In this document: piece after piece, positions 11,801 through 64,000 of the stretch | Layout: every line of letters starts with the position of its first letter | How positions within the stretch are numbered: position 1 is the first letter of the stretch | Source of the DNA: Mytilus californianus | Lineage: Eukaryota | DNA length: 64,000 nt | Direction of reading: 5' to 3' | Assembly: GCF_021869535.1 (NCBI RefSeq) | Contig: NW_026262734.1 | Coordinates: forward strand, 23,746,001 to 23,810,000 | Notes under the pieces: generated by a model | What the model was told of the DNA's origin: nothing | The model's input: only the letters and a program-made list of their open reading frames with translations | Database searches by the model: none | Position numbers and translations under genes: made by a program

Positions 11801-14402
11801 AACTGTTGTCCTTGACACAGATAGAAATGGAATGAGTTTGATGGGTATGAAGTTAATTGCGGGCAATACGGCTTCTACCACCAATTAAAACTTACCATCA
11901 GGAAATAGCCAGCAGTGCTCAAGGTAGCATTAAAACACCAATCAATCAAATTACCTTAAAATTAAGTACAATGTGTTATGATTATTTGGAAACCACTTGA
12001 CTAAATCTACTAAATGAAAATACAATAAAAATTCAGGTCAAGTCCCAGTTTGATGGCTTTCTTTTCAGAATTATGCCTTTCGTTACCATAAAAATTGATA
12101 TTTCTTTGGTTTAAGGGCGGTACCTCTTAACCAAATCTTTTGAAATTTGAACACAATGTCTTAGATCATAAAAGTACTGATTAAGTTCAGTATAATGATT
12201 TTGACAATTAAATTATTCACCTTACTTACCTTAAAACTAATATTTGTTTTTGGTGTCAATGTGTTAATAAAAGTATTTTTTTATGCCCCCGTCGCAGCGA
12301 AGGGGGCATTTAGTGTTACCCTTATACACAATGTTCATTATCACAAAACACAGGTCAAAATTGAATTTGTGTGGCGACACTTTTACCATTCTAGATTCAT
12401 GTCCCTTTATTAGTTTATATGCAAGCGAGTGCATCATATGTGTCCCATGGACACACTCTCCAAATATTCATATGTTAAGGTAGTGTGGGAGGCTTCCCCA
12501 ATCTTGGATTGTTAATCAGAAAACAATAGGTATAGAATTTTAATCAAGTAAGCAATCTTCAATGCAGTAATGCAATTTACTTATAAGAATTTTCGTTTTA
12601 ATGAACAATTGTATGTGCTTTTATCTTATAATTACTAAAAATTTTACAAAAGTGGAATATTTTTTATTGATTTCAAATTGTGTTACCCTATTGTTTCAGA
12701 AATTGTATAATCTATGAAGGAATCTACAGGATTGTTTTCTATTTCATGTTTGATCTGATTAATATATACAAAATGTGTCATTTTTTACAACCCATACCTT
12801 GAAAATAGCTCGTTAACCTATCATGTTTATAATATTTTTTGAAAAAGTCGAAAACAAACTGCCAATGCCATGGCAAAAATGATAAACGACTGAAAAGACA
12901 AACAATAGTACAAAAAGCACAACACTGAGCAACACAAACACCACTAAAAACCAGGGGAGGTCTCATGTGCTCAGAAATGGTAAGCAGATCCATCATGTTG
13001 CTCATGTAAGTACCAAATCAGTGATAAGTCTAATTGAACATTCTATATTTTCACAAAGTATGAAAAAAAACTATCAGTTTATCGTTTCAAATCCCATAGC
13101 GCCTTAAAACCGAGTTATGAAATATGAAATGCAGGTCAGGTTCAATTCGAATTTTCATTTCTCATTTCTTATTTTCAGACCAGGGTTATATGGGTTCCTA
13201 GAACACCAAATTCTAATATCAGATGACCTAAAATTGTTATTCAATTTGACTTAATATTTAGTATTTTTTTCATTAATAATGTTCTTAAAAATTGATTGAA
13301 ATGGAATCATCTTTTATGACAATTGTTTTTGTGAAGCAGTTTGAGGAAATCTGGCTAAATACTTTCTTCTGTATAATGTTAGTGCAGTGTTTGTTGTCCA
13401 TAAATGTACACAACAACACACTCAATGGACAGTAACCAAACGTCAGTTGTAAATATAGCTCACAAATTCATACAGCCCTTCCCCATGTTTTATGAATATT
13501 GAAAAATCTGTGTATTGTTAGTCTATGAGAAACTGAAAACTCATGATATTGCCATCATGTAAGTAATAAAAAGATGCTGTTAAAGTTAAACTAAAATGTA
13601 GCCAGTGACTTCAGATGAATTGCATTCACAATATGCATTTTCCAATTTGATATGGAAAAGTCTCTGTGTTGTTAAGGGGAACCAAAAGTAAATCATTTGA
13701 ATCAATAATTATACATGGAATGCACAATGCAATATTGTAGGATGATTTGCACATGTTTTATTGAAATCTACATGTGCTTTAGGAGAAATTGTAGATAAAG
13801 ATGCTTTCCACTTTTTGAAAATATGCCAAAGTCCCATGGAAACCCCAAATAACACTTGACAACTCGGTTTAAGGAGAAGATGCAGACAAACCTGCCTTTT
13901 TGTACACAGCAATGTCTATGTTTTACTATGGGAATCATAATGAGTAGTTCAAAACAAAACATAAAATAGGTGATCAATATCACTAGATACATGATATTAA
14001 GATTCTCCATAAGTTATGATATATAAACAAGTATGCAAATCTGTACCAAACGGATTGATCATCTAGAACATACGCTATATCACTGTCACATGTGAAGATA
14101 TTCATGAGTTACTTCTGGGCATGAAGATATGTTATTACAAACACACTAGAGACTGTACATAAAATTTTAATCTTGTATTTTTTAACATATTGCAAATTGA
14201 CACAAGCAGATTATTTCTGCTAATATATTCCTATTGTCTTTAATCCTCTTATTAGGTCTATATGTACATGTGTCACGGTATATTCCAAGACAGATATGTC
14301 AAAGAAGTACAATAGTTCTTTCTAACGAAAAATAAATAAATAAACGTCCACTGCACATCTTTGGCCAGTTCTGCATTCCAAAGTCAGATTAAAATAAACC
14401 TT

Positions 14403-14471
14403 TCATTTCCTTTCTTTCTTCCTTAACATTTGACCTGAACCTGAAAAGGCTTCAAAATCTTTTTCCTCCTC
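14403..14471 (-). CDS. UFD1: UFD1 exon 12 ([22 protein letters not shown])
   Basis: CAG acceptor, second SHP-box-like AFSG motif, TGA at 14403-14405. Confidence 0.93.
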   Translation of the reverse strand, partial: EEEKDFEAFSGSGQMLRKKERK

Positions 14472-17400
14472 CTGCAGAAAAGAAAAGTTACAAAAATGAA
14501 CTGGATGGCTTAGATCAAATGCATACAAGTACCATTAAAACGTTTAATCCCGCTGCAAATGTTTGCACCTGTCCTAAGTCAGGAATCTGATTACAGTAGT
14601 TGTCGTCTGTTTATGTAGTTCATACATGTTTCTCGTTTCTCGTTTTTATATAGATTAGACTGTTGGTTTTTCCATTTGAATGGTTTTACACTAGTAATTT
14701 TTTGGGGCCCTTTATATTTTGCTGTTCGGTGTGAGCCAATGATCCGTGTTGAAGGCTGTACCTTGACCTATAATGGTATACTTTTATAAATTGTAACTTG
14801 GATGGAGAGTTGTCTCATTGGCACTCATACCACATCTTCCTATATCTAGGTATATATATTTAATGAAATATAAATACAATAAGTTGTGTAATTTAGTAAC
14901 TGTTTTTAGTATATTGTTTTTTCATAAATCAAGCTGTTGCTTTTCTCATGTGAACTTTTCACATTTTGTCATGATTGGGCCTCTTATATCTTACCATACA
15001 GAATAGGTTTTGCTTATTATATAGTCTTGTAGAAGGCTGTACAGTGACCTATAGTTGCTTACATTTAAGGCAATTGGTCTCCCGATGATAACTACCTCAT
15101 AGGCAATCATACCACATCTTATTTTTAAAGTAATTATAATATATACACAAAGCATTAGGCTTTAGAGGTAAATGGAGTACTAACATAAAGTGAAACTGAT
15201 GCATATACCATCCAATGATATAAAAAAGAATTAATAGAAAATATTTAAAGGTAACTGATTAAAATTCATCCAATGGCCATTTTTTTAAATCTTACATCAC
15301 CAGTACTAAACCTATACAATTTATGAAATTTCAAATATATGCACAAATAAAACAGTTATACACTTAACTTATAGTTTCAAGCCATTTTTAAAAGAAACTT
15401 TGAAATTGCATGTACCATAAATACTTTAACAGTAACCATTAAAGTATAATCATAGCCTTTATTCCTATAATGGTATATGAATAAAAAATATGTGAGGTTA
15501 TGGTATATGAATGAAAAATATGTGAGGAAAATAAATGTGTCAATGAGAATTTGAACCAACAACCAAGATGATGTTAAAAGTGAATCACTTTACCTCATTA
15601 TTATCTGTGATATTCCTTCGAGTTCTGATAAATGTTATGGTACCTTTCTTATGTTTATAATTTGGGACTCCTCTGAAATTCAAATAAAATTGATGTAAAT
15701 GCAAAAACCTTATTATTTTAAGTTCAGCAAGTATCTATAGCTTTCTGATATTGATAATCTTTTAAATTTTGGGGTTTATTCTGTATATTCCAACATTTTT
15801 GAATTTCATGAAATATTAAGGAAATTATGTTTGGGTTACTAGAATACCTGTATGTAAAGGCATTAGAATTGTGAATCTTGTAAACATGATGCTAGATCAT
15901 GTTGTAACATATTTTACATTAAACGAAGGTAAATCTAGGTCAAACATGCGGAAATTAAAGAGTAGGAATATATATTATTACAAAATTTCATAAATTTAAA
16001 GCATACTTGGTAATTGACACACACTTTATGCACAACATAAATTAAATAGCGCAATATATAATAACAGAATATTTACATAAACAGGAAATAATTTCAGATG
16101 AAAATATTTAAAGAGAAGAAAATTGGATATGAAATGAAAATGATCAATATTTATACAGCACATATGGTCATTGGAACACATCAAAAAGTTCAGAGAGTTC
16201 TTAAATTACACAGCCGAAATTAAGCAACTCATGCAAGCATACTTCCATATGACACTGGATTGATGAGCCTTTATGAAGTGTTTCTTGTGTGACCTGGGCA
16301 GATAACCTTATACAAATTGTTGTTGTGCGACACAGGCTGATAGGCCTTTAACAGGGCCTCTAGCAATCCCTATTGAGTCCCACTTCTGGTCGTATATGTT
16401 TATTTAAGAAATAATTCATGGCAGCTATAGATTTGTTTTCATTTAACCATGGGTTGGGCATTTATATTCGCTTTTTTTATCCCGAGCGACATCGAGGGCT
16501 AAAATACGAATATAAATGCCCAATCCATGGTTAAATGAAAACAAATCAACGGCTGCCATGAATTATTTCGATTCTAATAGGACAAATTTGGTAATTTTGT
16601 TAACCGTGAAAAGCCTATACACACGATACTGTTTTGGCTGTTCTGTTTTACACCCATATGATAATATTAGTAATATTATATTATTCAATAATAAATTTTT
16701 AAAAAATCACATTTTTAACCTAAATATGTTCTTTAAATGTAATTTTTAAGCTTTAAAACGCCCGGTGTTTACATTTGAAGCCAGAAGCATACATATGACG
16801 TCACCTTGTTTAGTTGCCATACAAAGACGATAACATCATTTCGCAGAATTTTTGTTTTATGGAATTTTAGACCATAAATAAATTGAAATGGACTGATTTG
16901 TTTATTTTGCTTTAGAATAGAGATAATTATATTGTATCTGAATCTTGGCCTACGTAAACTGTGGGTTTTGATGTCGCAAATTGAGAATACCTGGTAGTAT
17001 AAATAAGTTGGGCGAAACACAGAACAGCCAGTTTTGTGTATTTATGCGCCTGCGCTTAAAGTAGATATACTGTGATTATACTGGTTGACAATATATAGGT
17101 TGTCATATTAGAATTATAAACAATTTTTTCAAGTATTTGGACCGTGTATATTATTAGATTTTTTATAAAAAAAATATTTTAATATGAGATAAACTTGATA
17201 ATGATGTCACACTGTGGATTCATTATTGTTCGTAGGATATCAATTTTTCATGGATTTCATGGGAATAGGTTAACCACAAATTCAAATGTTTAACAAAGTA
17301 AAAATTTTCTACTGGCGCTTGTATGCTGAATTTGGCAAAACCACGATATAAAATATCCATGAAATAATAAAGAAAAGAGAAAAATGATCTAAAAAATTTA

Positions 17401-56278: not shown

Positions 56279-57086
56279 GTGAGTGTTATTTCCTGTGAAA
56301 ATTATTATCAATCCTGAATATTAAACCTGATCAGTGTCAGAATCTCCATAATATTCAAATCCATGAAAAAATCCACAATTTTTATGCCCTACACATTTTG
56401 GCCATCATGACCAACATTTTGTAATAAAAGATTGAGAACTATGGCTATGTTTTTATGTCAAGATTTATATTTCAGGAAGAGCTGATATTCTTTTAAAAAC
56501 AAAATTAGCATGTCCACATTTCTATTAATGGGGAGATAATCCATTTTATAATCTTTCTCCTTAGAACTGCAGTGCTGAATAAATTATAGGTCTGTACATC
56601 AAGTAACAATCATATGAATAGATATGGGTTTTAAAATCTAAAAATAAGTCACAATGAATGGATGAATTGGATAAGTGCTATTCCAGAAAAAAATGTATGG
56701 GGGTGTTGGACGGCAGTTGATCTTTTTTTGCATGGGTGATGGGGGGAGGAGGAATTAAAATTGTGTGGGTAGTTGTTCTCTTACACAACTTAATTAGATG
56801 GGTGGTTGTACCTAAAGAGAAGAAAATATCTTTTTCAGTTGATAGAACCTTCAAATATCGATGGAAAACGTGTTTTAATCGGCGATTTTGTTTACTTTTT
56901 GCGCATATTAAATCCTTTGGTTAATGCCCGAGCGTTTCGAATGGAACTGTATATGCATATCGGTGTTCCTAAAAGGGAGAGAGTTACAAAGTGTCAGAGT
57001 AGTAACTGGTTCCCGGATTTCTTTTTTAACTGTTTTCCCTAATGTGACATGTTCAGTTACCGGATTGTTTACCGCATGGAAACAGC

Positions 57087-57168
57087 ATGGCTGGACAGTG
57101 GGATGTTATCGCTGTTTGTTCCTGGCTCCAATCCAATGGATTGGGGAAATTTGCGGACTTTTTTACAG
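57087..57168 (+). CDS. SAM-VTD gene exon 1 (N-terminal half of SAM)
   Basis: ATG at 57087, WxxxxVxxWL motif, phase-1 GTAATA donor. Confidence 0.8.
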
Positions 57169-60100
57169 GTAATATTTGTTCATTAAAGGAGATGGTGTTG
57201 TGAAAATTTATCCACAACTCGAAGACTGGCTCCAGAAAAGCAAAGTTTACCATGTTATTAACGAAATAAATGCAAAAAACAAAAAGTCAGTATGTTTTAC
57301 TGACAATCGAAATTAAACAGATAAATGAGTGTATATTCGAAAGGAAGTTACAGAGTCCCAATACAAACAATAAAATGATTTTAATTAGGGTTATTAAAAA
57401 AAAAATTTCATACGAGAAAAGGCTGTTTTGTTGGCATCTTGATTCTTGATTGATTTTTATTTTATCATTATATATATATAATAAAAACACAGAAATGACA
57501 AAAATAAACATAATATAACCACAAGAGTATTTTTTTATCAGTATTGTGTGAAATATGCTCCAGAACTTGATTAGTACAGTGAAATGTTTTGTCAGAAGGT
57601 AATATAATTATTTGTTTGCCTTTGGCATAGTTTGATTGTTATTATTCTGAGTATACATGAGGGTCGTAATGGGGGTACCTTCATGACCAATAACGGTAAA
57701 AATTCTTAACAAATGACGTTAACGGTAATTTTTGGTACATGACGATAAAATGTACACTTTCTTTTAAACGATAAAAAAAATCAACTGATTTTGACGAATC
57801 ACGTTAAATTTTTTCCAAAAATAACGGTAACGATAATTATTTGAGACCTCTGACGAATCACGATAAGGATATTTTGACAAATCACGGTAAAATTTTAACC
57901 AATATGACGCTAACGGTAGCCAAAAATGACTGTTTGACGCCTGACGGTAAATGGCATTCCTACCCTCATACATGGGTAAATTAATTATAACCAAAAAATT
58001 ACTTTTATGTACACATGTAGTAAAATAGATAAGTCACAGTAGTTTTTCAAAGTTGCAAGCAGATTCTATTGAACTTTGTAGGAAATCAATGTCGGATATA
58101 AATTGCCAGTATTATTTGTAAGTAGTAGAACTTATGAACCTACACATGCTTTTGGTGGATGGATATTTTATCATACTTAATAACTTATAGCTAGCTTGCT
58201 GTGTAAAAGCACTATATAATCAATAATTTTAATGCACATTTACTTGTTTTCATGCTGTTTATTCATTTCACTTTTTCTGTTATTTTCAACATATATTTAT
58301 AAACAAATTGCCTAATGTGATAAAGATATTTGATGCAGTTTACATGTACATGAAATTATCACAAATTAATTCTACCACAAAATTTTTAGATGTTGATGGA
58401 ATTTGTATACGGTAATCATTTTTAACTTTCATACCCTGCTATATATCCATATATCTATCACATATATTATTCTTGTGCTTCTGTAATCATTCTACAGGCA
58501 TGGATTTAGAGGTTGGCATATGTCTTGCCCTTTCCCCACTAAAAATGAGAGGATTTTTTTTAACACAGTAAACATTTAAGCATTGTTACCCTAGACAATG
58601 AATGAAAAAAATGCACCTACTAAAACCAAAGTCCTGGATCTGTGTCTGCTTTAATTTGTATTTCTCAAAGTTTCCTTTGATTGTTATTCTTTTAAAGGTG
58701 ATTATTGATAACAAATTATGAAAGGTATTTCACACCAAAACCAGCACTTTAATATAAAAAAGTACTTCAATAGATAATTAACATACCGGGTAGATACTAT
58801 TTACTAATATTCAATCTTAACTCTTTGTCAGGTAAGTGATTCAGTTCTAGTAGAGGTTAGCCTAGAACTGAATAAATGCTTTTAAGACTAACCTCAGACT
58901 TTTCGAGATAGAATGAATAGTTACAAACAAAATGTATATATAGTGGTCACATAATACCTAAGAAATGGAATCAGATATAAAACTTTTGTCAGAAACTACA
59001 GAGACAATTTGAATAAAACTAGAGGAGTGGTCCATGATTGTCATTTACTACAATTGTAACTCTCAATTTTTTAAATGACTGTTTTATACTCTGATTGGCT
59101 GTCCGACACTTTTTGTATGTCGTGGTCACTTTTGCCATCTGTAGACATTTGGTTTTTATTAGCCTAAATTATTGTATATCATTGTCCGTCCATCCGTCAT
59201 CACCACTTCGAACAAAAACCCAAAACAACTTTCACCTATTTTCATGTTTCAATAAATCATCATATCCTATCCCAGCACCCCAACTCCATAGATCACTACG
59301 TGTTTGGAACATCTACTTAGACCAATCAGAATAAACTTTTTTTATTTAGGAGTATTTTGAGGGGCATAAAGAAGGGAGGGGTTTACTAAAGAACCCTATG
59401 GGATTTTATTTTTTTTAATTTTCAAATAACTATAAACGTGAAAACCGTAGGTAATAGATGCACTCGGTCTTCAGTAATGATCACTAGACAATAAAACAAA
59501 TCAAATAAAATGAAGGGTAAGTCCCTGGGGGTCACCACCACCCCCTTCAATTTGAGAATGTGCTTTTATCTTGCAAAAGGTCCAGATTCCCACCCCTAAA
59601 CCATATATATTCTTGTATGGGACAATAAAACAAATCAAATGAAATATAGAGGGAGTTCCCAGTGTCGCCCCCACCCCCGTCCTGTTTGAGAATGTGTAAA
59701 CGGTTTAGATCCCCACCCCTAAACCATATATATTCTTGTATGGGACATTAAAACAAATCAAATGAAATATAGAGGGAGTCTTCGGGGTCACCCCCATCCC
59801 CATCCTGTTTGAGAACGTGTAAACGGTTTAGATCCCCACCCCTAAACCATATATATTCTTGTATGGGACAATAAAACAAATCAAATGAAATATAGGGGTA
59901 GTCTCTTGGGATCACCCCCACCCCCTTCTGTTTGAGAACTTGAAAATGATCGAGATCCACACCCCTAAACCATATATATTCTCGTATGGGACAATAACAC
60001 AAATCAAATGAAATATATGGGGAGTCCCCAGGGGTCATCCCCACCCCTCCTGTTTGAGAAAACAAAACATGTTAGAAAACACAATCATTTCAAATTTTCA

Positions 60101-63100
60101 TTGACATCAAATCCTTTATAAGCAAGTGAGATGTGACAGCTAAAATGGAAAAAAATTATAGGGGTAGTACCAAGGGTTTTATAATTACAAGGCTTTGATT
60201 GGGAGACTTTGTAACAGCATCCTGTTACTATTATGTATTTTTTTAAATGAAATTTCATAGAAATGTGCCTTGTATGGTAAATATTCAACTTTGTCATTTG
60301 CTATTCATGTTAAGTTGGATTGAATGATAGTTAGGAGGGGGTTTAATGTATAATCACAGTAAGTATTTGTTTTACAAGACCATTTTTTTTTTATAATTTC
60401 AGAAGAAGAAATAGATGGTAATGCTTTATTGGGCCTAAACGAAGATGAGGTGTTACAGATTTTCCCAAAAATGGGACCAAGGGCAAAATTTAGGACCCTC
60501 CTTCATCAGTTAAAGGTATGAACATAACGCCAGATCCTTTTATATTTAACATGTTTTATTATTATCAAAGGACATCTATGTTTTTATGCCCCACCTACGA
60601 TAGTAGAGGGCCATTATGTTTTCTGGTCTGTGCATCCATTCGTTTGTCTGTTCGTTCGTCCGTCTGTCCCGTGTCAGGCAAAAGTTTTTGGTCAAGATAG
60701 TTTTTGATGAAGTTGAAGTCCAATCAACTTGAAACTCAGTACACATGTTCCCTATGATATGATCTTTCTAATTTTAATGCCAAATTAGAGTTTTGACCCC
60801 AATTTCACGGTCCACTGAACATAGAAAATGATAGTGTGAGTGGGGCATCCATGTACTTTGGACACATTCTTGTTTACATATGTGAATGTTTGGCATGATT
60901 TTGGTTTCCTTTTCTTATTTCAAATCATGTCGTGCTTTTCTTTGACAGATCAATATTTATGAAATGCATTTATCATCGGAACATATGTTGATAGATATAT
61001 GCAACATACTTCACTGAAGCTGTACTGTGACATATAATTGCTTATATTTATTACATTTGGTCTTGTTTTCTGCCATTAACCACCAAAACTGTCATCTGTA
61101 GATCCATCCTAATATCCCTTTTTTACTTGTTTTTTATGTTGAACATGTTCTTGTCTGATTTTATCCCCATCAGTGATCACACGATGTTGAAGAACCATCA
61201 ATCAATCAATTTAAAAGATAAACAATTTTTATTATGTTACAGGAAGGTGACATGAAGGAAAAAAAGCCTGAGAAGCCTGAAGAAGTCACCAAAGCATCTG
61301 TAACACTTGAGGCTGTAACTTTTGAAATACAACCAGAAAATATGGAACATGTAGAAATAAATGATCTTGAGACCAAACAACAAGATGTTAAGGTTGAACC
61401 ACAGATTGTCAACAGAAAACAGGCTATCCCAAAAGCACAGATAACAGCAAAGTTAGCACCTGGTACTCAGATGACACTTAATCATTTTCTGAAGGGAAAA
61501 ATGGATCCTAAATGTGACAGGTGTGTAACTATACCCATTGCAAATGAAGTTATAGGGGTATACAGTTTTGACCTAATGGTAACAACTTTTTGTCATTACT
61601 TTTCCTCTGTCCTCTGTTGTAATAGAAAATAAAGGGATATGGAGTAAATGTACATGGGACAAAATTGCACAAAATACATAGAGAAAATACAAATTATCAA
61701 TCAACAGGGCTTTTATTCCTGTTCTTCATCTTGACAGTCGATGTAGAGTCTTCAACAATGAACGAATCATTCATAGCCTACAACAAGGTCAAGACGGCCC
61801 CTAGCATCTTTCTACATCCATTTAATTGTTTATTTAATAGGTGAGCTTTGCAGGTTTAGATGAGTATTAGGTTTTACTGTCAACAAATATGGGCACCACG
61901 CTTTAAAAAAAACATTTAAATAGAGAAAACGCAAAGTGGCAATTTATTCAGATGTTCTGTAGCTCAAAAAACAAAAAGGAATAACCCTGTCTGTCTCTCC
62001 GTCTGTCTTACTAAGTTTAACATTGCAATATGTGGCAACAGGTGTCCTAAGTGGAAAAAGGGGGGTATCTGTTACTCTGCACACATTCTGTCTTTATTTC
62101 AATTTAGTATGATGCTTGTATTTATATACAAATGAAATAATGTTGTTTTTTTTTTCAGATATGGTGAATTGAGGCGTATTGGTTTTAAAGTTTTCGAACA
62201 AGAGTTCCTAGATTTGCAAACACCTATGAAGCGTGCATGGTATGAGTTTTGGAACAAAAAGGCTTTGGACTTCGCACATAAAAATACCAAAAGATCTTAT
62301 ATGGAAGGTTTGATAAAAAAAGCCTGGTCATATGAAGGTGGTAGACAGATTGCACTATGCAAATTTGGGAAGGAAATCGGTAAAGCTCAAAAATTAGAAA
62401 ATGATCCATTCAGTTGCTATGAGCAAGCAGCAGAACAGAAACAAAATGAAATACAGAAATTGGAGACAGAAAAGACAGAAAAAGAGCAGGAACTTTGTAG
62501 TCGAATATACAAAGGAACCATTTCTATGAATGATAAAGTTTCATTACGAAAGCATATAAAATTGATAACAGTTGATGCTGAGAAAGCTGAGAAAGATTAT
62601 TCAAAAATACTAACAAACTGGACAGCTCATGCTTATAAAGTTGAGAGACGGGGGGGAAGAAGAAAAAGAAACCTGGTAGGAAAAGGAAAGCAGAAATACA
62701 GGAGATAAAATATCTGACTGCAAAGGAGTTAAGGTCTAAGAAAAGTAAAGTTGATAACCAGTCAGCAGGCAACCAAGATAAAAGTATGGAGTCAAATGAT
62801 ATGTTTGTAGAAGACGCAGCTGAGATCACAAGTGACAACCATGATGAAGGTATGGAGTCAAATGATGTTATGTTTGTAGACGACCCAGCTGAGATAACAA
62901 AGGACAACCATGATGAAGGTATGGAGTCAAATGATGAAATGTTTGTAGAAGACCCAGCTGAGATCACAAGTGACAACCATGATGAAGGTATGGAGTCAAA
63001 TGATGTAATGTTTGTAGACGACCCAGCTGAGATAACAAAGGACAACCATGATGAAGGTATGGAGTCAAATGATGTAATGTTTGTAGACGACCCAGCTGAG

Positions 63101-63858
63101 ATCACAAGGGATAACAACAATGAAGGTATGGAGAAAAAGAATCAGGAAAAACAGAAGAAAAATCCAATGACAAAGAAAAACATGACCCTATTTATACCAC
63201 AGACATATGATACGTACCTTGGAATAAAGTTGTTATTTCCAGGAATCAGTCAGAACACAGTTGGGCTTCCCCATGGTCTATCACGAGGTTCAAATGCTTG
63301 CACTGGTTTCTGCCTAAAATTGGCTGAACATTTTTTTAATGAAAAATTTTCTCTTCACATTAAACCCGCACTTTCCGAGTATAGAAGTAGCCTGCATGAA
63401 ATAGTATCAAGGTATGAGGACAGAAACATTCAGATGATGGACACAAAATCAGCTATGACATATTTTGGATATCAGAATTCGATGAAAATTATATCAGACA
63501 CATATTGGCACCGACAACTTGGTGTAGGTGCATCTGATGACCATTAGAAATATGCAGTGCAGAATACAACAGATCGATAAACTCACAAGAAAGAGAAGCC
63601 CTTTGTATCACTGTGTCAGACAAAACATTCATCATTTTAAATAATGAGGAAGGAGATCAAGTCCTTTTTGACTCCCATGTGCATTACACTGATGATAACA
63701 TGACTCTAGAAGATACTTTAAACAGAAAAGATCTACATGGTCTGATTGCTGCAAGTGACAAAACCTCAAACATGCTTATGTATGTATTTGCTCATGTTGT
63801 AAATGAACTAAGATGTTCCACTGATACCGGATGTATGTATCACTGTCAAAAAAACTAA
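57087..63858 (+). CDS. SAM-domain protein with C-terminal tegument-like (C76/VTD) deubiquitinase-like domain; 4 exons, last exon with two frame breaks (assembly error or pseudogene)
   Basis: Exons 57087-57168, 60403-60515, 61243-61520, 62159-63858; GT-AG, junction phases 1, 0, 2. Exons 1+2 give MAGQWDVIAVCSWLQSNGLGKFADFFTEEEIDGNALLGLNEDEVLQIFPKMGPRAKFRTLLHQLK (SAM pattern). Adding one base at the G7 run (62650-62656) and one C near 63541 gives a single 724-aa frame. Confidence 0.75.
57659..57967. mobile_element. 309-bp MITE with 6-bp TSD
   Basis: Ends GAGGGTCGTAATGG / GGCATTCCTACCCTC; ATACAT on both sides; internal TAACGGTAA repeats. Confidence 0.75.
59487..60060. repeat. 123-bp tandem repeat, about 4.6 copies
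   Basis: GACAATAAAACAAATCAAAT at 59487, 59621, 59744, 59867, 59990. Confidence 0.93.
60403..60515 (+). CDS. SAM-VTD gene exon 2 (C-terminal half of SAM)
   Basis: EEIDGNALLGL...MGPRAKF motif, T-rich CAG acceptor, GTATGA donor. Confidence 0.85.
60581..60874 (-). mobile_element. pearl/Helentron-like short element
   Basis: TTTTTATGCCCC... microsatellite ...GGGGCATCCATGTACTTTGGACACATTCTTGTT; related to about 12276-12461 and 32262-32666. Confidence 0.75.
61243..61520 (+). CDS. SAM-VTD gene exon 3 (charged linker)
   Basis: 278 nt inside track ORF 61234-61632, AG/GTGTGT flanks. Confidence 0.75.
62159..63858 (+). CDS. SAM-VTD gene terminal exon (track ORFs 62169-62708, 62786-63547 and 63613-63858 joined by two -1 shifts)
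   Basis: Strong T-tract CAG acceptor; the downstream frames are open back to 62645 and 63541, overlapping the upstream frames. Confidence 0.7.
62786..63127 (+). repeat. Coding tandem repeat, 69 bp (23 aa) x5
   Basis: MESNDVMFVDDPAEITKDNHDEG units; the first unit is 22 aa. Confidence 0.97.
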
Positions 63859-64000
63859 AATATGCTCCTTGTTTACCTATGCGGGAAAATTCAATAAATG
63901 TCTCATGTAAAGAAAATACAACAAATTTAAATATTTATAAAAGAAGATTAAAGAATGATAATTTTCAGCGTGATGGCCGGAGATCAGCAGCAATAAAAAA

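Follow-up and report, generated by a model that had tools for sequence, protein, structure and literature searches.

We report the analysis of a 64,000-nucleotide stretch of the genome of the mussel Mytilus californianus (NCBI RefSeq assembly GCF_021869535.1, contig NW_026262734.1, positions 23,746,001 to 23,810,000 of the forward strand; hereafter the window), in which positions 56675-64000 most likely belong to a copy of a cut-and-paste DNA transposon of autonomous type, bounded by terminal inverted repeats (TIRs), and make up its left two thirds. The first open reading frame (ORF1) of this element encodes a SAM domain and a protease of the VTD type, a second frame (ORF2) encodes a DDE-type transposase candidate, and a -1 ribosomal frameshift probably leads from one to the other. 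We are fairly confident that these parts belong together in one Zator-like TIR transposon of bivalves. The initial annotation of the window had placed here a gene of 57087-63858 with a product of 724 amino acids; that product corresponds to the first reading frame, but it is only the first of two in a transposon, and the extent given was too short at both ends, since the unit starts at 56675 and, in the -1 frame, coding sequence appears to extend beyond 63858 as far as the window reaches.

The case for a mobile element begins with its ends. Three mussel copies, those of the window, of chromosome JAKFGE010000006 (L002) and of chromosome JAKFGE010000011 (L011), become homologous at one common base, about 410 bp 5' of the exon 1 ATG, and L002 and L011 also share their end base, while the flanks are unrelated. 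Identity among the three is 96-98.5% (98.5% between window 56663-64000 and L002, 96-97% between L011 and the other two). The left arm of the window copy has one substitution, position 2 being T where the other copies have G; its match is unique in the window and none is expected by chance. In L011 the two arms form a perfectly complementary inverted repeat of 30 nt, AGGGCTATTCCAGAAAAAAATGTATGGGGG, and in L002 the inverted repeat reaches 50 nt at 90%. The element of the oyster Crassostrea virginica has a 36-nt inverted repeat at 94%, of nearly the mussel sequence, with arms 10.6 kb apart. Mussel, oyster and Mya arenaria elements have one and the same terminal 12-mer, which at the Mya locus stands at both ends of a 12.1-kb unit.

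With the ends of the element taken as GGGC...GCCC, each of the four complete elements is flanked by a 3-bp duplication, TTA/TTA in L002, L011 and Mya and TAA/TAA in the oyster; in the window the 5' side can be read, and it gives a TAA. Duplications of 2 bp (TA, as for Tc1/mariner) and of 4 bp (TTAA, as for piggyBac or Kolobok) were considered and rejected, as only the 3-bp solution fits both flanks in all four. The complete copies, 10.6-12.1 kb long (11,249 bp in L002 and about 11.2 kb in Mytilus), come from the two M. californianus chromosomes, from C. virginica and from M. arenaria. The window copy seems to lie at a third insertion site, because its left flank (1-56671) is unlike those of the other two, with no similarity of at least 150 bp to the L002 flanks or of at least 200 bp to the L011 flanks. 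The Mya element (L005:4364-16504) has the terminal 12-mer, the TTA duplications, the second SAM exon, a slippery heptamer and ORF2; the middle and protease domains of ORF1 were not detectable in the 3.2 kb between its SAM exon 2 and the heptamer and ORF2. An older mussel-like copy (L009/L010) is 70-73% identical to L002, and its ORF2 is split into many short ORFs.

TIRs with duplications were thus found in four complete elements, and at the 5' end in the window, with several copies at unrelated loci. Because the four exons and their introns lie between these TIRs, we place the gene wholly within a mobile element. The initial annotation had instead suggested a dispensable, immunity-type host gene whose VTD domain was captured from a rolling-circle transposon, and neither suggestion held up. 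A host gene of this kind, possibly immunity-related, with a new SAM and VTD architecture acquired through Helitron-type capture, or else a domesticated transposon gene, we now regard as very unlikely. It is true that the RefSeq annotation of the locus, in mussel as in oyster, is that of an ordinary gene with multiple exons and several transcript variants, that exon structure is conserved among oyster, mussel and Mya, and that Helentrons and domesticated genes are both known to contain VTD domains (PMC9741609). The exon conservation, however, travels with conserved TIR termini and is therefore conservation of the element and not of a host locus. The whole gene recurs between TIRs with duplications at unrelated loci on different chromosomes, at 96-98.5% identity, and also inside other genes: L011:4631-16447 is on the strand opposite to a condensin Cnd1-like gene whose span encloses it, presumably in one of that gene's introns. 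Several copies are decayed (the window, L011 and L009), the damage in L011 being a frame change within the protease and the loss of about 320 bp at the start of ORF2. Finally, the -1 frame continues into a DDE-like ORF2, and neither the Rep and helicase nor the TIR-less ends of a Helitron or Helentron were found.

ORF1 is divided among four exons, all of which translate as initially annotated, and their equivalents in L002 have GT-AG borders and form an uninterrupted frame of 699 amino acids, that is, 50 SAM residues followed by the RefSeq protein. An oyster-like protein (P0001) that matches the C-terminal pieces led to isoforms X1-X3 of the M. californianus 'uncharacterized protein' LOC127704263, and the RefSeq models XP_052064209-212 of this locus (P0007, P0002 and P0008) contain junctions 60515/61243 and 61520/62159 exactly. 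Junction 57168/60403 lies outside the RefSeq models, the mussel proteins of which lack exon 1 because they start at a Met inside exon 2. Its support is comparative: the oyster has an exon 1 (L003:7952-8033) of 82 nt, phase 1 and with a GT donor, like that of the mussel, exon 2 of both oyster and Mya is 113 nt long and in the mussel phase, and the two exons hold the two halves of a SAM domain. The oyster exon 1 was located only once the oyster TIR had fixed the left end of the element; a GQWDV match at L003:106-120, from the first tblastn search, was rejected on reading as a chance match.

The SAM domain was seen in the initial annotation as split over exons 1 and 2, and the Pfam matches agree. 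The exon 1 peptide corresponds to SAM_1 positions 2-24 (E 6e-4, 20.5 bits) and the exon 2 peptide to positions 27-64 (12.8 bits); the two matches are complementary, and each half alone is below the 23-bit cut-off. Both halves are kept as coding sequence in relatives, in exons 1-2 of the oyster and exon 2 of Mya: oyster exon 1 shows the SAM N-terminal pattern, with weak SAM_1/2/3 matches, and exon 2 of both species carries an IDG...L...GPRA motif. As the size and phase of the SAM exons are conserved in the oyster, and those of exon 2 also in Mya, the SAM domain appears to be an old part of the element's protein. The SAM exons were recognised solely by reading the mussel, oyster and Mya elements, and none of the ten longest of 86 family matches has a Pfam-detectable SAM; in line with the initial remark that this architecture was not a recognised one, the combination of SAM and VTD is undescribed in annotation. 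A Pfam scan of every exon piece and of 25 family members gave nothing besides the SAM halves, matches to Thymopoietin and HlyE having been dismissed as repeat or coiled-coil noise.

Between the SAM domain and the protease lie three further parts. The middle domain is present across the family, at about 45% identity between mussel and oyster, and has no match in Pfam or in a PDB sequence search. The basic stretch, which resembles a nuclear localisation signal (NLS) or an AT-hook, was found where the initial annotation had put it and has the family form EKKKPGRKRK. The five acidic repeats reported there are likewise present, as a tandem repeat of 69 bp in 5.3 copies; L002 has 4 units and L011 about 19. 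The three RefSeq 'isoforms' of LOC127704263 are distinguished solely by having 2, 3 or 4 of these 69-bp repeats, and the L011 paralogue is named 'argonaute-2-like' in RefSeq, its Thymopoietin Pfam match being a spurious one from the repeats. Both the 'isoforms' and the 'argonaute-2-like' name look like annotation artefacts of the variable repeat.

For the C-terminal domain of ORF1, an AlphaFold model of the intact reference copy was obtained with a predicted local distance difference test score (pLDDT) of 94.4 and a predicted template modelling score (pTM) of 0.91. The first six ranks in a Foldseek search of the PDB are taken by 8ADD (E 2.6e-6), 8ADC, 8ADB and 2J7Q, at probability 1.0 and template modelling (TM) scores of 0.5-0.6, and the matches in the BFVD library of viral structures are mostly to the herpesvirus large tegument protein. 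The family is small, a search of 1.84 billion proteins having yielded 86 representatives at E <= 1e-3. In 24 aligned members (A3) a Gln about 15 residues before the Cys is conserved, as is the motif GS[SN]AC; a Trp is invariant, and Asp-x-His-x-His, in which D164 and H166 are at least 90% conserved, is nearly so. The corresponding motifs in the window are GSNAC and FDSHVHY. The Asp-x-His arrangement, or 'flipped' triad, is the hallmark of the VTD class (PMC9741609). A VTD/C76-type, papain-like fold, as the initial annotation proposed, is hence supported by the nearest solved structures and by the Cys, Asp-x-His and upstream Gln, though sequence profiles do not bear it out, and from fold and motifs together we infer that the domain may act as a deubiquitinase.

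The best structural matches are to zebrafish DrT1-VTD2 (8ADD) and bacterial Wc-VTD1 (8ADB/8ADC), with which the mussel domain has the Cys, the Asp-x-His and the upstream Gln in common. Like the mussel domain, the VTDs of Helentrons are accessory proteases encoded by transposons (PMC9741609). They belong, however, to a rolling-circle element with Rep and helicase, whereas the mussel protease belongs to a TIR/DDE-type transposon and is fused to a SAM domain, a middle domain and acidic repeats; there is no detectable sequence similarity between the mussel protease and the Helentron or bacterial VTDs. M48 of murine cytomegalovirus (MCMV; 2J7Q) and the USP domain of UL36 of herpes simplex virus 1 (HSV-1; C76) are of the same fold class. 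The herpesvirus tegument domain differs in being N-terminal in a giant virion protein and shares 8-14% identity with the mussel protease, which has no viral context.

A protease of VTD fold need not be a deubiquitinase, and we considered whether this one instead releases the transposase from an ORF1-ORF2 fusion, or has another substrate in the manner of YopT or AvrPphB. The position of the domain, exactly at the junction of ORF1 and ORF2 as are proteases in Gag-Pro-Pol arrangements, would suit such a role, the lack of a sequence-level link to characterised VTDs leaves room for it, and the YopT-like AvrPphB (1UKF) does appear among the structural matches, where it ranks after the VTD and M48 structures. 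Against this, every one of the six top-ranking structures is a deubiquitinase of the VTD/C76 class; the characterised VTD proteins all cleave ubiquitin, and enzymes of YopT type lack the flipped Asp-x-His that is conserved in the mussel family (PMC9741609). We therefore think another activity unlikely and continue to treat the domain as a putative deubiquitinase.

The second frame was revealed by P0037, a relative of 1692 amino acids that extends about 1000 residues beyond the protease; the extension matches the DNA directly 3' of the ORF1 stop in mussel and oyster. In L002 this ORF2 is intact (919 amino acids, 13291-16050). The oyster ORF2, of 925 amino acids, is intact in contig L006 and has one in-frame stop (14230-14232) in the reference copy, L003; L006 is a contig from another C. 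virginica sample and is 98.9% identical to the reference copy. The window includes the first 56 codons (63831-63998), which are 98% identical to the start of ORF2 in L002. Homologues of ORF2, all uncharacterised and without a Pfam domain, were found in M. coruscus, M. edulis, Mya arenaria and further contigs, and identity across the family is 38-59%.

ORF2 lies in the -1 frame with respect to ORF1 in Mytilus, in Crassostrea and in two further lineages (L007 and L008), with overlaps of 13-67 nt, and each of the four overlaps contains a canonical X_XXY_YYZ heptamer that is in phase and at, or at most two codons from, the ORF1 stop. ORF1 ends in A_AAA_AAC TAA in the mussel (in the window and also in L002), U_UUA_AAC TAA in the oyster, A_AAA_AAC UUG UAA in L007 and A_AAA_AAC UGA in L008, to which Mya adds A_AAA_AAC UAC UAG; most ORF1s of the family terminate in ...KN. 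Since the background of in-phase heptamers in these ORFs is 0.72% per codon, a heptamer in every short overlap is unlikely to have arisen by chance, although the lineages do not count as independent. The similarity of ORF2 reaches upstream of its first AUG in the oyster, L007 and L008. We consider it likely that programmed -1 ribosomal frameshifting leads from ORF1 into ORF2, and the ORF1 reading frame does not seem to end functionally at 63858.

It is also conceivable that there is no programmed frameshift, and that ORF2 is expressed separately, by reinitiation, an internal promoter or an unrecognised splice, or that the -1 offset is a shared inactivating mutation of a single ORF such as P0037. 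ORF1 and ORF2 are indeed fused in one frame at the heptamer site in P0037/L004 and in the decayed mussel paralogue L009 (there at an A-run), the mussel ORF2 has an in-frame ATG at L002:13291, in-phase heptamers occur elsewhere in the ORFs at 0.7% per codon and no RNA structure was found downstream. On the other hand, the -1 relation and a very short overlap recur in four lineages whose proteins are 55-75% different, and in every one of them the final three codons of ORF1 include an in-phase canonical heptamer, which in the oyster has another sequence. Most of the ORF1s of the family end in ...KN, and ORF2 is intact and conserved past the shift and, in three lineages, conserved before its first AUG; had a shared mutation inactivated the gene, 900 codons would not have stayed open in several lineages. 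The absence of a frameshift we thus judge distinctly unlikely, and frameshifting remains the reading that we prefer. The P0037 frame occupies L004:353-5431 as a single ORF, on a 7.8-kb contig of assembly GCA_029980085.1, with a TatD DNase gene 380 nt later.

In bacterial IS3 and IS1 (OrfA and OrfAB), in the Gag/Gag-Pol of retroelements and in Kat1, translation reaches a catalytic protein by shifting -1 on an X_XXY_YYZ heptamer where the upstream frame ends, as we propose for the bivalve element. Kat1 of Kluyveromyces is a domesticated hAT transposase made by programmed -1 frameshifting, a precedent mentioned in PMC4316626. The bivalve element differs from all of these in being a metazoan TIR transposon with a spliced gene, in which no stimulatory RNA structure was found and the frameshift is a predicted one.

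ORF2 has predicted features of a transposase. D428, D552 and E596 are invariant in its alignment, and the structural model (pLDDT 69, better in the core) has the RNase H-like order beta1-beta2-beta3-alpha-beta4-alpha-beta5-alpha, with D428 on beta1, D552 at or after the end of beta4 and E596 on the next helix. In DDE transposases the first D is on beta1, the second on or after beta4 and the E on a downstream helix (PMC5718144), and the model thus predicts a DDE triad on an RNase H-like fold. Foldseek gave weak matches, led by the Mos1 mariner transposase and followed by other RNase H-like folds, and a PDB sequence search with the ORF2 profile gave no match. The sole transposase family to surface among 14 ORF2 members was ISAzo13 (NCBIfam), in two of them, at E 0.03-0.08 and over profile positions 50-92 in the N-terminal region; none of the 14 matched a Pfam transposase family, Harbinger included, at E up to 10. 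A tblastn search of the ORF2 core against plasmids, aimed at ISAzo13 transposases, returned one chance match, and no curated bivalve Zator elements were found in supplementary literature material. The conserved ORF2 motifs GSGR...P.L...HPRL and SK..SVER resemble ISAzo13 signatures, a similarity that we treat as a lead rather than as a test.

In eukaryotes the partner of ISAzo13 is Zator, and 3-bp duplications are made by either (PMC10045372, PMC5718144). Pfam contains no model of Zator (PMC5751038), and reports of Zator include bivalves (PMC10294476). The bivalve element shares with Zator/ISAzo13 the 3-bp duplications (TTA or TAA in four of four complete elements), the TIRs and a DDE transposase, here a predicted one, that has an RNase H-like fold and lacks a Pfam family, but the similarity of its ORF2 to theirs falls far short of every threshold. 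Most probably the ORF2 family is related to the Zator/ISAzo13 group or belongs to it as a divergent member, and placing the element itself as Zator-like stands at about even odds. A SAM and VTD ORF1, introns and a frameshift have, to our knowledge, not been described for Zator.

The nearest competitor for the placement is the PIF/Harbinger-ISL2EU-Spy (PHIS) group, or else a wholly new DDE superfamily, and we regard this as rather unlikely. PIF/Harbinger elements resemble the bivalve element in their TTA or TAA duplications, the classical Harbinger target, in their TIRs and in needing two protein products; the ends of the bivalve element begin with GGGC, PHIS members make duplications of 0-4 bp (PMC10045372), and the ISAzo13 signal is very weak. 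What speaks for Zator over PHIS is that no ORF2 homologue of the 14 matches Harbinger or another Pfam family, that ISAzo13 was the only transposase family to appear, and that a mariner transposase, from a group that has been reported as close to Zator (PMC4455052), is the best structural match. Nor was the Myb-like second protein of PIF/Harbinger seen; ORF1 has no Myb-like match in Pfam.

Several points weigh against the account as given. Only a handful of copies were seen, by comparison of which transposition is proposed, and the mussel and oyster RefSeq models begin inside exon 2, without exon 1 and ORF2. No sequence profile links the protease to VTD/C76 (in Pfam, including its herpes tegument N-terminal family), the ORF1 profile A2 has no PDB sequence match at E up to 10, and a deubiquitinase activity is predicted from fold and motifs. 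For the frameshift, the ORFs are AT-rich and in-phase heptamers are therefore no rarity in them. RNA folding 3' of the heptamer did not predict a stimulatory structure of the kind expected 5-9 nt downstream: nothing exceeded shuffled controls (single-sequence z-scores of -0.2 to +1.4), and alignment of the region gave no consensus pairs; these predictions cover stem-loops, not pseudoknots. The structural matches of ORF2 are weak (best E 0.012, low TM score, model pLDDT 69), and the ISAzo13 matches, at 12-13 bits, are far below threshold and outside the catalytic core.

The window copy itself differs from the intact L002 by two breaks of the reading frame, which correspond to the two corrections that the initial annotation had needed. 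Both are in homopolymer-rich sequence and may represent decay or assembly errors. As assembled, this copy could make neither an intact protease nor an ORF1-ORF2 fusion, and it is defective unless both breaks are assembly errors. The features of the window are collected in the table. The 123-bp repeat of intron 1 is also present in L002 and L011, where it appears as offset BLAST ladders, and the rest of the window has no ORF of at least 110 amino acids in which we saw an obvious meaning.

Table. Features of the transposon copy at positions 56672-64000 of the window
Feature	Position	Strand	Basis or remark
Candidate 5' target-site duplication, TAA	56672..56674	+	Matching 3-bp flanks of complete copies; 5' side only in the window
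5' terminal inverted repeat, 29 nt, GTGCTATTCCAG...GGGGG	56675..56703	+	Sharp homology onset in three mussel copies
Element-internal 5' region before the ATG, presumed promoter and 5' untranslated region	56704..57086	+	Position alone
Exon 1, 27 codons + 1 nt, N-terminal SAM half	57087..57168	+	Pfam SAM_1; identical in L002; oyster counterpart
Tandem repeat of 123 bp, 3.9 copies, 88% matches, inside intron 1	59584..60060	.	TRF
Exon 2, 113 nt, C-terminal SAM half	60403..60515	+	Pfam SAM_1; exons of equal length and phase in oyster and Mya
Exon 3, low-complexity linker with conserved GTQxTLxxFL motif at its end	61243..61520	+	Both junctions in RefSeq models
Exon 4 (middle domain, basic stretch, acidic repeats, protease)	62159..63858	+	Translation
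Middle domain with coiled-coil-like stretch, first part of exon 4	62159..62650	+	Conserved across the family
Frame break 1	62650..62661	+	Net +2 nt against L002; G/A-rich run
Basic stretch KKKKKPGRKRK, NLS-like or AT-hook-like	62657..62689	+	Form in the family, EKKKPGRKRK
Five acidic 23-residue repeats	62770..63133	+	Tandem-repeat scan; copy number variable
VTD/peptidase C76-like cysteine protease domain	63185..63855	+	AlphaFold model of intact reference domain, Foldseek, motifs
Protease motif residue Gln	63251..63253	+	
Protease motif residue Cys	63299..63301	+	
Frame break 2, between the protease Cys and the Asp-x-His motif	63531..63541	+	Against L002, +3 insertion and -1 in a C run
Protease motif residue Asp	63670..63672	+	
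Protease motif residue His	63676..63678	+	
Start of ORF2 in the -1 frame, transposase candidate	63825..64000	+	Runs off the window
Canonical slippery heptamer A_AAA_AAC, in phase	63849..63855	+	ORF1 stop (63856-63858) directly after

We propose that the element would work as follows. Transcription would start between the left TIR and the ATG, within a stretch of 410 bp, and yield one spliced gene product, exons 1-4 giving an ORF1 protein composed of the SAM domain, linker, middle domain, basic stretch, acidic repeats and protease. Most ribosomes would stop after the protease and a minority would slip by -1 on A_AAA_AAC into the ORF2 of about 900 amino acids, with the result that much ORF1 protein and little ORF1-ORF2 fusion would be made, as in Gag/Gag-Pol or the OrfA/OrfAB of bacterial IS3. 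The basic stretch may bring both proteins to the nucleus or onto DNA, and the SAM domain may help them to oligomerise or assemble. The protease might strip ubiquitin or NEDD8 from the transposition machinery or from host factors, a protective role as has been proposed for the VTDs of Helitrons. The fusion would bind the 29-nt terminal repeats, and its DDE core would cut at the TIRs and insert at TWA, which would create the 3-bp duplications.

TIR transposons that carry an accessory protease are a known kind, and so are VTD deubiquitinases; it is the combination of SAM, VTD and a probable frameshift that is unusual. We would advance only tentatively the wider possibility that the element represents a metazoan cut-and-paste family, found in three bivalve orders or more and seemingly intact in M. 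californianus, whose transposase is made only as a -1 fusion to a SAM/VTD-type deubiquitinase protein, and which forms a deep, undescribed branch of Zator/ISAzo13 or a new superfamily. If this is true, a class II element would possess both a dosage device like that of Gag/Gag-Pol and a countermeasure to the ubiquitin system.

For the annotation of bivalve genomes it is useful that an apparent orphan, 'immune-like' gene becomes a transposon gene, the mussel copies being labelled at present 'uncharacterized protein' and 'argonaute-2-like' in RefSeq. The VTD deubiquitinase family would be extended from rolling-circle elements and herpesviruses to a TIR/DDE transposon, which strengthens the idea that mobile elements repeatedly recruit enzymes that remove ubiquitin. 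With this element, programmed -1 frameshifting could also be tested in a DNA transposon of animals, for which the lineages with differing heptamers and those with fused frames are natural controls, and the reference copy L002 of M. californianus, in which both frames are apparently intact, is a candidate active element.

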